Positions 42,801 through 45,800 of a stretch of DNA of 64,000 bases are shown piece by piece. A model generated the notes under the pieces. It had not been told where the DNA came from, made no database searches, and saw only the letters and a program-made list of their open reading frames with translations. The stretch is from Macrostomum lignano. Taxonomy: Eukaryota. The position numbers and the translations under genes are program-made. The stretch's first letter is position 1. Each line of letters begins with the position of its first letter. The DNA lies in the NCBI GenBank assembly GCA_002269645.1, contig NIVC01000759.1, forward strand, positions 186,001 to 250,000. The letters are read 5' to 3'.

Positions 42801-45800
42801 TCCATCTGTCACTCCCTTACTTTCACTCTCTCCAACTGTCACTCCTTTTCTTTCACTCTCTCTCCATCTGTCACTCCCTTTCTTTCACTCTCTCCATCTG
42901 TCACTCCATTTGTTTCACTCTCTCCATCTGTCACTCCCTTACTTTCACTCTCTCCAACTGTCACTCCTTTTCTTTCACTCTCTCTCCATCTGTCACTCCC
43001 TTACTTTCACTCTCTCTGGTTATCTTTTTAATTAGCCAAAATTCACATGTTTGCGAAATCTTTTGGCCTTTGGCGGATGCTGTTTTGTCCGTCTTCAGTC
43101 TACAAGTATACAATTTTCAGTGTTTTGGTTATCTTAACATTTTCAAGCTAATAAGGCATTGCAGCCCACGTGTTTACTGGCAATGTTATGCAGGCAGCTT
43201 ATGTAGCTGCGAATATCGCTTTTACAGCTGCAGCGCTTGGGACTGAAAATCGCTTTGCCAGAACTTCATTTGCTTAGTGCGTAACGCGATTTGAACCAGT
43301 GCAAATTTATGCTATTGAGTAAACAGCCTCCGTGTTTTCAGGTGTCTGACGTGGTTAGAAACTTTATTATAGTCTTAATGCTCAGCTGCGATTGTAAATT
43401 GCAGTCAGTCAGTCAGTCAGTCAGTCAGTCAGTCAGTCAGTCAGTCAGTCAGTCAGTCAGTCAGTCAGTCAGGCAGTCAGTCAGTCAGTCAGTCAGTCAG
43501 TCAGTCAGTCAGTCAGTCAGTCAGTCAGTCAGGCAGGCAGTCAGTCAGTCAGTCAGTCAGTCAGTCAGGCAGTCAGTCAGTCAGGCAGTCAGTCAGTCAG
43601 GCAGTCAGTCAGTCAGTCAGGCAGTCAGTCAGGCAGTCAGTCAGTCAGGCAGTCAGTCAGGCAGTCAGTCAGGCAGTCAGTCAGTCAGGCAGTCAGTCAG
43701 TCAGTCAGGCAGTCAGTCAGTCAGGCAGTCAGTCAGTCAGTCAGGCAGTCAGTCAGGCAGTCAGGCAGTCAGTCAGGCAGTCAGTCAGTCAGGCAGTCAG
43801 TCAGTCAGGCAGTCAGTCAGTCAGTCAGTCAGGCAGTCAGTCAGGCAGTCAGTCAGTCAGTCAGGCAGTCAGTCAGTCAGGCAGTCAGTCAGCCGCTGCC
43901 GCAACACTGCAGAGCTGAGGCCGAGCTTCGCCCTCATGACCGGCGTGCTGTCCCTGGCGCTGTTCTGTCACAACGCGGTGATCACGCTGACCCGGAACCA
44001 GCTGCGGCCAGAGAATAATGTAAATCTTTTGTTGCTGGGCCGGTGCAAATGTGTTTTTTTTCATTTCTCACCCCGGCTTTGCAGCTCACCGCATGTACTT
44101 AGCAATCTTGCACGCATGTTTGTCACTTGTTCAGTGTGAACCGACACAGGTCGTGAATTTGTTTGTTACCCGCCCGCTTTCAGAGTTCTCGCCCAGCTTT
44201 GTGTCCATGGCTGGCGTGCTGTCCCTGGCCCTGTTTAGCCACTGCTTCATTGTCTCCCTGATGCGGGAGCAGAGGCAGCCGCAGAATAATGTAATTTCGG
44301 CTCAGGGAACGCCTGGACTGGGGCTTGACTGGCTTTTTTAGCTCAAGCTTTCAACTGCGATTATCATTTTTTCATTTCAAAGAATGCTGCTTAAGCGAAA
44401 AAATTAATATTTCACAAATTTATGCTTAAATTTTATATTGCTCGGGTTTTTTAAGTGGAATATCTGTAGTATCCTTTTTAATCAAGTCCCAACGCTAGGA
44501 TACAAAATATTAGTTTCTAAGGTGGAGCTCCGTTGCTAGGGTAAACCCTGTCCCTAAGGCGTGGATCCTGTTGCTAAGGTAATCCCTTTGCTAAGGGGTT
44601 AACTCTTGCTAAGGTTTAAACCCTGTTGCTAAGGTGTGGATCCTGTTGCTAAGGTGTAAACCCTGTTGCTAAGGTGTGGATACTGTTGCTAAGGTGTGGA
44701 TACTGTTGCTAAGGTGTAGATCCTGTTGCTAAGGTGTAAACCCTGTTGCCAAGGTTTAACCCTGTTGCTAAGGTTTGGATCCTGTTGCTAAAGTGAAGAT
44801 CCTGTTGCTAAGGGGTTAAGTCTTTTGCTATGGTGTAATCCCATATTGCTCAGAGGTACACTCTTTTTCCATAGCTTAGGTAACTCGAAAATATTAAGTT
44901 GGAATTTAGTATATGGAATTTAATTCGTTCAAGTCCGAATTTATTGCGGCTTAAGTTTTATGACTATGAGTTGCTGTGATTTGCAAGCTCTGATTGCCAA
45001 TGAATTCCGCGCTGCTTACCTGTACTCAAAATGAATTTCATTTCAACTCTTGCCAGATATCAGTGCGGCTTTTGCAAATTCACGTTCAAAATTCTGAAGT
45101 TTAAGATACTGATATCCTACTCGCAGTAGGCGAAATGCAAAATGCAGTAAATTTTCTGGCTAATTTTTAGACTCGAGACCTGCTAATTGCCTACGTGTGC
45201 GTCTCGATCACCTACATTATTGTGGGCCTCGTGTTCTATGCGGTCTACCCGCTGGCTAAGGACTGCATTGAGCAGGTGAGCTGGGCAGGTGATAAATACT
45301 CTGACTACTATATTTAAACGCAGTTTGTATCAGTTAAACACACTGTGACTGCACCAGATAAACACACTGACTGCATCAGTTAAACACACTGTGACTGCAC
45401 CAGCTAAACACAGACTGCATCAGTTAAACACACTGACTACACCAGTTAAACACACTGACTGCACCAGTTAAACACACTGACTGCATCAGTTAAACACACT
45501 GACTACACCAGTTAAACACACTGACTGCACCAGTTAAACACACTGACTGCACCAGTTAAACACACTGTGACTGCACCAGATAAACACACTGACTGCATCA
45601 GTTAAACACACTGACTACACCAGTTAAACACACTGACTGCATCAGTTAAACACTGACTACACCAGTTAAACACACTGACTGCACCAGATAAACACTGACT
45701 ACACCAGTTAAACACACTGACTACACCAGTTAAACACACTGACTACACCAGTTAAACACACTGACTGCATCAGTTAAACACACTGACTACACCAGTTAAA

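Follow-up and report, generated by a model that had tools for sequence, protein, structure and literature searches.

Tandem exons for transmembrane helix 6 of SLC38A9 in Macrostomum lignano, a flatworm: a probable mutually exclusive pair with counterparts in other animals

A 64,000-nucleotide stretch of the genome of the flatworm Macrostomum lignano (assembly GCA_002269645.1, contig NIVC01000759.1, positions 186,001 to 250,000; hereafter the window) contains the M. lignano orthologue of SLC38A9, the mTORC1 amino-acid sensor. The fifth of its eight exon positions is occupied by two adjacent homologous exons, 5a and 5b, each encoding a version of transmembrane helix 6 (TM6), and these exons are likely to form a tandem-duplicated, mutually exclusive pair. 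The gene model, which was built from open segments and splice sites in the window, consists of the following elements (coordinates are those of the window).

36807..47755, plus strand: SLC38A9 gene; GenBank BOX15_Mlig026656g2, PAA77180.1; eight exon positions, the fifth doubled
36807..37321, plus strand: exon 1; N-terminal cytosolic region, including PHHVVP
37963..38120, plus strand: exon 2; TM1 with the WNTMM motif
38573..38724, plus strand: exon 3; repeated without any change at 40759-40910
41415..41838, plus strand: exon 4; constitutive, ending …ATCCGGC/gtgagt (here and below, a slash in a sequence marks the splice site)
43913..44019, plus strand: exon 5a; 107 nucleotides (nt), canonical TM6 exon
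44020..44183, no strand assigned: intron between 5a and 5b; 164 nt, GT…AG, with a pyrimidine-rich tract ahead of 5b
44184..44290, plus strand: exon 5b; 107 nt, alternative TM6 exon, unannotated
45171..45275, plus strand: exon 6; constitutive, TRDLLIAYV…CIEQ, phase-0 start
46517..46755, plus strand: exon 7
47581..47755, plus strand: exon 8; closes with the stop codon

Spliced with 5a, the model is 100% identical to PAA77180.1 (protein P0002) over 624 amino acids, and the gene region of the window is identical to locus L004. The protein carries an Aa_trans domain (PF01490; Pfam, E = 7e-32), its only matches in the PDB are the zebrafish SLC38A9 structures 7kgv (E = 2.4e-127) and 6c08 (E = 2e-121), and all of its named homologues are called "neutral amino acid transporter 9". 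Exon 2 holds both the WNTMM anchor motif and the GTS motif described for TM1 of SLC38A9 (Lei et al., 2018, 10.1101/288233), and the conserved N-terminal stretch (…PHHVVP) of the flatworm protein can be aligned to the zebrafish sequence. The identity of the gene, which the original prediction had proposed from the DNA letters, is borne out by the match to 7kgv.

The two copies of exon 5 have the borders ...ctgcag/AGCTGAGG...GAATAAT/gtaaatc for 5a and ...gctttcag/AGTTCTCG...GAATAAT/gtaattt for 5b, so that AG stands ahead of each copy and an ordinary donor behind it (GTAAAT and GTAATT, respectively). Both start in phase 1 and end in phase 0. Because exon 4 stops one base into a codon, exon 5 has to bring two bases, and each copy does so in the same single open frame, two nucleotides that finish the split codon (C+AG, glutamine, with either copy) being followed by 35 codons; the phase-0 ends fit the phase-0 start of exon 6. 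In an ungapped comparison, 5a and 5b agree at 72/107 nucleotides and 19/35 amino acids (20/36 when the shared split glutamine is counted), and their local alignment score of 39 was reached by none of 500 shuffles, the mean of which was 9.6 (0/500, p<0.002). A translated search across the 64-kb window detected no third copy of exon 5.

Either 5a alone or 5b alone, joined to the other seven exons, yields an uninterrupted coding sequence of 624 codons, whereas inclusion of both leads to a stop at codon 478 and skipping of both to a stop at codon 446. By this frame logic, a productive mRNA has to contain one of the two exons and not the other. The description from which the analysis started, namely two homologous exons of 107 nt with equal phases and canonical splice sites, 164 nt apart, diverged yet both open, and breaking the frame when included jointly, can be read directly from the sequence. 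Its further step, that the pair is used in a mutually exclusive way, is backed by every sequence-level hallmark and by the either/or use of the same exon in other animals, but in M. lignano, 5a is the version present in every protein on record.

By alignment, exon 5 corresponds to about residues 342-377 of zebrafish SLC38A9, which comprise the end of the loop between TM5 and TM6 (loop 5-6) and the two halves of TM6, TM6a and TM6b, in agreement with the earlier placement on the TM6 helix. In the zebrafish protein, Arg344 in loop 5-6 and Pro348 in TM6a belong to luminal gate clusters, the carbonyl of Ala357 lies at the predicted Na1 site, and TM6 lines the central substrate site together with TM1 (Lei et al., 10.1101/288233). 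Moreover, a bond links Cys363 of TM6 to the N-terminal plug (N-plug) at its main chain (PMC9994763). Exon 5b differs from 5a at 16/36 residues, spread over TM6, which is a broken helix, and the end of the luminal loop 5-6. The most conspicuous changes affect the motif H-N-(C/A), located where TM6 is broken, of which 5a retains the nearly invariant His-Asn; in 5b, the Asn is replaced by Cys and the Ala at the position equivalent to Cys363 by Phe. Among 132 distinct versions of the exon, Cys at the Asn position followed by Phe occurs only in 5b and in an M. lignano paralogue described below. An effect of 5b on the substrate or ion site formed by TM1 and TM6, or on the docking of the N-plug, would be plausible, and the difference in ligand specificity or gating put forward in the original prediction is hypothetical. 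The residue equivalent to Arg344, which is Arg in zebrafish and in 5a and Ser in 5b, was considered as a functional clue and dropped; the change should not be over-read because this column is variable in invertebrates.

The same exon is alternatively used in other animals. Equal-length annotated isoforms from members of the homologue cluster were compared position by position, and isoforms differing solely in the 36-residue TM6 segment were found in Branchiostoma lanceolatum (in RefSeq as well as ENA models), in two B. floridae hybrid assemblies, in Ptychodera flava, in Antedon mediterranea, and in Mya arenaria. Further examples are the starfish Asterias rubens, A. amurensis, Patiria miniata, and Acanthaster planci, and the sea urchins Lytechinus variegatus, L. 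pictus, and Strongylocentrotus purpuratus. In Ruditapes philippinarum, the annotated isoforms alone show three variants of the TM6 exon (XP_060606235/37/38). Representative pairs are the following.

Branchiostoma lanceolatum: XP_066298611/XP_066298612; CAH1244221/CAH1244222
Ptychodera flava: XP_070563040/41
Asterias rubens: XP_033637137/39
Strongylocentrotus purpuratus: XP_030851454/56
Mya arenaria: XP_052775192/93

In the genome of B. lanceolatum, the two exons stand in tandem (locus L005, 8205-8311 and 8652-8758), 340 nt apart, each 107 nt long, with the same split first codon and a phase-0 end. Another example is the annelid Owenia fusiformis (locus L009, CAIIXF020000001.1), in which the annotation contains the TM6 exon at 18220-18326 as the only form, and a second one, unannotated but intact, is located 1.1 kb downstream at 19471-19577; it is also 107 nt long, is bounded by AG and GT, and encodes FEFSFFALSGTMALAYFIHNCVLSILRNQKNPENS. 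In contrast, only single copies of the exon were found at the genome loci of Lineus, Schistosoma bovis, Lingula, and Nematostella, and the annotated isoforms of Montipora, Daphnia, tick, Limulus, and C. elegans do not differ in it.

Fragments of the exon are present at two of these loci. In Nematostella vectensis (L010, 5847-5879), the last 11 codons of the TM6 exon are duplicated 14 bases past the donor, with a GTAAGT of their own (ILSHQKKPKHN/gtaagt), which could serve as an alternative donor. In B. lanceolatum, the intron ahead of the upstream TM6 exon includes a tandem-repeat array, and within it (L005, 7927-7950) the first 8 codons of that exon recur as an incomplete copy together with an acceptor-like CTAG.

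The other invertebrate pairs resemble that of M. lignano in that the same exon, with the same borders and phases, is present in tandem and the isoforms are otherwise identical; the length of 107 nt was verified in amphioxus and Owenia. They differ from it in that both members keep His-Asn (His-Met in starfish) and vary mainly in the next residue, which is Cys in one and Ala or Gly in the other, and in a few further positions, whereas 5b of M. lignano has His-Cys-Phe and its isoform is unannotated. In deuterostomes, two types of the exon can be recognized, …PAL(T/S)G…YFIHNC… and …(F/M/I)(T/S)G…FIHN(A/G)…, and the column that discriminates best between them is the residue after His-Asn, that is, the N-plug contact Cys363 of zebrafish. 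According to profile log-odds, both 5a and 5b score as the Ala type, and in a tree they cluster with the exons of flatworms. A one-to-one orthology of 5a and 5b with the Cys/Ala pair of deuterostomes was rejected on these two grounds, weakly, as only 36 residues are compared. Since both exons are of the Ala type and group with flatworm exons, the flatworm pair is more likely to be an independent, lineage-specific duplication than a retained deuterostome pair, a tentative assignment given the 36 residues.

A second SLC38A9 gene of M. lignano helps to place 5b. This paralogue (P0003, BOX15_Mlig002873g1), of which two further copies exist (Mlig024480g1,g2), encodes a protein 54% identical to that of the window gene and, in a full-length tree, is its sister with 100% bootstrap. 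Its layout of eight exons is the same, and its exon 5, also 107 nt long, encodes QFSPKFFSYTGILSVALFCHCFLILLVKPAKNPKNN and shares with 5b the derived Q-F-S-P start and the H-C-F motif (…LFCHCF…). Exon 5 is single in the paralogue, and no trace of a 5a-like copy was found in its flanking introns of 330 nt and 127 nt. A tree of the exon alone unites 5b with the exon of the paralogue in 61% of bootstraps; 5a is grouped with 5b in 4% and with the paralogue in 4%. Synonymous divergence (dS) is 0.74 between 5b and the paralogue exon and 0.70 between 5a and 5b, compared with 0.72-1.43 for the other exons between the paralogues, and nonsynonymous divergence (dN) of exon 5, at 0.37-0.43, is 2.5-4 times that of the TM exons 2, 6, and 7 (0.15-0.17). 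By these values, the duplication of the exon would date from roughly the time of the gene duplication, and the protein sequence of exon 5 would subsequently have evolved fast. Gene conversion from the paralogue into the window gene is possible as well. Since the only exon 5 of the paralogue is of the 5b kind, a TM6 with His-Cys-Phe works constitutively in an annotated protein. In our reading, it would be the working TM6 of the paralogue and an alternative TM6 of the window gene.

Taken together, the comparative data permit a broader view, which we put forward tentatively and consider doubtful as a whole. According to it, the TM6 exon would be a hot spot at which the mTORC1 amino-acid sensor acquired an isoform switch, either repeatedly or anciently. 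Since the alternative exons differ most consistently at the residue that contacts the N-plug in zebrafish, the switch would tune the strength with which the binding of luminal amino acids is coupled to plug release and to Rag/mTORC1 signalling, or it would change the amino acid that is sensed. In Macrostomum, 5b and the paralogue, both of which have replaced the nearly invariant Asn, would have a qualitatively different TM6 site. The switch would then occur in annelids, clams, flatworms, echinoderms, and amphioxus, and, judged by annotated isoforms, the examined sequences of the vertebrate type and those of nematode, tick, and Daphnia would lack it.

Whether 5b is maintained in the window gene can be judged from its sequence and surroundings. 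The similarity between 5a and 5b ends at the exon borders, as the 150-nt flanks of the two exons yield local scores at shuffle level (p = 0.21, 0.16) with an ungapped identity of 23-38%, and the intron at 44020-44183 does not resemble the one that precedes 5a. A neutrally drifting 5b should resemble its flanks, and therefore the exon-limited similarity speaks for maintenance. Not a single indel separates 5a from 5b; when three copies of the gene are compared over the neighbouring introns, repeats excepted, about 9 indel events are counted for every 18 substitutions. The GC counts of 5b by codon position are 18/14/29 of 35, which corresponds to a GC content of 83% at third positions (GC3; binomial p = 5e-6 vs 45%), as compared with 31/35 in 5a, 74-90% in the other exons, and a GC content of 35-47% in the adjacent introns (47% in the intron at 44020-44183). 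The three gene copies are located on separate contigs, NIVC01000759 (the window, L004), NIVC01000874, and NIVC01004324 (the last two being L002 and L003), and are 96-98% identical at the exon-5 region. In all of them, 5a and 5b are 107 nt long, have the same splice sites, and encode identical peptides, and the differences among the copies, four in 5a and one in 5b, are all synonymous. The case for maintenance rests mainly on the exon-limited similarity, the lack of indels, the codon bias, and the comparative data; this indirect evidence probably favours a live 5b.

Several observations weigh against a functional, mutually exclusive 5b. All six M. lignano proteins on record for the gene and its near-identical copies contain 5a (among them P0002, P0121, P0122, and P0001, an ab initio model), and an exact match to the 5b isoform was absent from a collection of 15 billion proteins. 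The GenBank annotation of M. lignano stems from a StringTie/TACO assembly with --isoform-frac 0.75 (PMC5730564). Isoforms far less abundant than the main one are dropped under this setting, because of which the missing 5b model is expected and is weak evidence; according to the same TACO-based annotation, 5a is the major form in whole-worm RNA. The single change in 5b among the gene copies compares with about 4 events expected per 107 nt at the intron rate, a deficit that is not significant, though consistent with constraint. The dN/dS of 0.53 between 5a and 5b (dN 0.37, dS 0.70) would also fit a constrained 5a and a neutral 5b, which would give the same value of about 0.5, and a neutral simulation limited to substitutions preserved the splice dinucleotides and the open frame in 11-33% of trials. 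In addition, 5b lacks the Asn that is present in 124/132 of the distinct exon versions, which could reflect a lost function rather than a new one. With respect to splicing, no conserved docking/selector RNA pairing was found: the sole perfect inverted repeat that brackets 5b is 10 nt long (44152-44161 / 45075-45084), about 0.9 such repeats are expected by chance in 1.3 kb, and neither arm varies among the three gene copies, which leaves no covariation to examine. Intron 4 consists nearly entirely of repeats, a minisatellite at 41870-43250 followed by a (CAGT)n-like microsatellite at 43400-43893, and as the latter runs to about 20 nt ahead of the acceptor of 5a, this acceptor has no pyrimidine tract. 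Exon 5b has a good one, and therefore the strength of the splice sites does not account for the prevalence of 5a.

These points have to be weighed against three other explanations. The one that deserves most attention regards 5b as an unused relic, either an old tandem copy or a gene-conversion patch from the paralogue, that is ignored by the spliceosome and has not yet been broken. It would account for the annotation of 5a alone, for the dN/dS of about 0.5 and the fast protein change of exon 5, and for the missing Asn, and in the neutral simulation frame and splice sites were retained in 11-33% of trials. We nevertheless consider it unlikely, because a relic should not have its similarity confined to the exon with flanks diverged to random, nor be free of indels against an indel-rich neutral background, and because its in-frame GC3 would, at a dS of about 0.7, decay towards the GC content of the introns. 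The retention of the AG/GT sites and of the peptide in three gene copies, the alternative use of the same exon in many phyla, and the paralogue that works with a 5b-like exon point in the same direction.

Exon 5b could also act as a poison exon that is never translated into a 5b protein: joined with 5a, or when 5a is skipped without being replaced, it would give rise to transcripts targeted by nonsense-mediated decay and thereby tune the dosage of SLC38A9. The premature stop upon double inclusion agrees with this, and the 164-nt intron is long enough for splicing, making double inclusion physically possible. A poison exon, however, needs neither an open frame nor an exact length, nor TM-like hydrophobicity with a G-x-L-S-L-A-L-F-x-H core, nor a frame-specific GC3, and the homologous pairs of other phyla are annotated as productive isoforms of equal length, so that this explanation appears highly improbable. 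A collapse of two alleles or homeologous copies of one exon side by side would be conceivable in view of the highly redundant M. lignano assembly (PMC5730564), and the window copy of the gene does hold a second, nearly perfect duplication of 778 nt (99.9%) around exon 3. Yet 5a and 5b are 33% diverged, the identical arrangement recurs on NIVC01000759, NIVC01000874, and NIVC01004324, and it matches the arrangement in amphioxus and Owenia; the probability of an assembly or haplotype artefact is close to nil.

If 5a and 5b are a mutually exclusive pair, each mRNA would take one of them, and double inclusion or double skipping would lead to a frameshift and a premature stop, the products being lost, most likely via nonsense-mediated decay. 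Steric exclusion is not expected, as the intron of 164 nt compares with roughly <60 nt between donor and branch point, and neither is an incompatibility of U2 and U12 sites, since all four sites are ordinary GT-AG with the donors GTAAAT and GTAATT (a U12 donor would read, e.g., /RTATCCTT). The choice between 5a and 5b would presumably be set by trans-acting factors. The 5a isoform would be the canonical, major one, and the divergent 5b isoform, if 5b is spliced in as we infer, would probably be minor or restricted to certain tissues or states. It may alter the handling of substrate or ions, or the coupling of the transport cycle to the release of the N-plug, by which the protein would signal to Rag/mTORC1 and whose TM6 contact in zebrafish is the Cys363 equivalent changed in 5b.

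The remaining features of the window and of related loci concern the gene copies and their surroundings. The 778-nt segment with exon 3 and its flanks occurs at 38426-39202 and 40612-41389, and an open reading frame between the exon-3 copies (39202-40515) encodes an RNase H domain and is a retroelement fragment. The L002 and L003 gene copies have one exon 3 and lack the insert, and an older ab initio model (A0A1I8GFM3, 894 amino acids) reads through the exon-3 duplication and the insert. The duplication could have arisen when a retroelement inserted and a long flanking stretch was duplicated, or it could be a local assembly artefact. The 5' end of exon 4 and its acceptor (…cctcag/GGCGGCTGCTTCATCCACAGCCAGCTG.ACAATGTCACCGAGATTGACGG…) are located inside a short tandem repeat array (about 38850-39320 and 41040-41460) that encodes a repeated peptide in several frames, and because of this array several equivalent acceptors lie ahead of the frame-keeping one of exon 4. 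Minisatellites are also found in the intron between 5b and 6 (44500-44870) and in the intron between 6 and 7 (45276-46516), for instance with units containing TGTTGCTAAGG. Their copy number varies strongly between the gene copies, the intron between 5b and 6 measuring 880 nt in the window, 1517 nt in L002, and 1537 nt in L003.

Elsewhere in the window, a gene for an adaptor-complex medium (mu-type) subunit occupies 51950-53559 on the minus strand (Adap_comp_sub, E = 6e-74; Clat_adaptor_s in the N-terminal part) and is found downstream of SLC38A9 in 3/3 gene copies. An open reading frame on the plus strand at 7740-8987, with reverse transcriptase-RNase H and integrase domains, is a pol fragment of a retrotransposon of the long terminal repeat type. 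In amphioxus (L005 1-582), the nemertean Lineus (L006 1-839), and the brachiopod Lingula (L008 1-661), a phosphoglucomutase gene is located head-to-head directly upstream of SLC38A9, and this pairing looks like conserved microsynteny across phyla. Within 10 kb upstream of the M. lignano copies, L002 has a ribosomal L27A gene, and L003 and L004 have no neighbour with a Pfam match.

The type of exon described here is familiar from other transporters. In SLC7A2, the closest functional analogue known to us, an alternative segment of 40-odd residues distinguishes CAT-2A from CAT-2B and changes the affinity for arginine, and SLC25A3 has the alternative exons 3A and 3B. We know of no vertebrate counterpart of the SLC38A9 TM6 pair. 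Clusters of mutually exclusive exons of the Dscam1 and 14-3-3zeta type are controlled by competing RNA structures; like these, 5a and 5b offer a choice of one exon from a tandem array, but the docking/selector pairing was not found for them. In SLC12A1, SLC7A2, and SLC25A3, as in the 5a/5b pair, adjacent homologous exons of equal length encode a membrane segment, and the isoforms differ only there. Substitutions of tandem duplicated exons in membrane transporters and channels are mostly ancient, recur in distant phyla, and are enriched in ion transport, and SLC12A1, with three alternative exons, is an example in the survey that established this (PMC9741552).

The original prediction had assumed that a switch of this kind in SLC38A9 was undescribed, which holds in part. 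For echinoderms, Ptychodera, Branchiostoma, and bivalves, equivalent isoform pairs stand in RefSeq and ENA annotations, but full-text searches retrieved no paper that discusses them and none in which SLC38A9 is connected with exons of the mutually exclusive, tandem-duplicated, or homologous kind; as far as the accessible parts of the two texts go, the two co-occurrences of such terms with SLC38A9 belong to unrelated human studies. The exon class is already known, and the invertebrate pairs are already present in automated annotations; the case of M. lignano is an unannotated second exon of an unusually radical kind.

SLC38A9 links lysosomal amino acids to mTORC1, and work on how transport is coupled to signalling via the N-plug is still in progress, all of it concerning the proteins of vertebrates with their single TM6. 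Pairs of isoforms that differ in nothing but TM6 are natural experiments on the residues responsible for substrate choice, ion coupling, and plug docking. Macrostomum, a transgenic model for regeneration, gains an unannotated candidate isoform of a nutrient sensor as well as a paralogue with an unusual TM6. For genome annotation, M. lignano and Owenia illustrate that a real second exon can be missed if pipelines keep the dominant isoform only. Finally, the TM6 exon of SLC38A9 provides a clear case, among transporters, of tandem exon substitutions that recur at one place in distant phyla.

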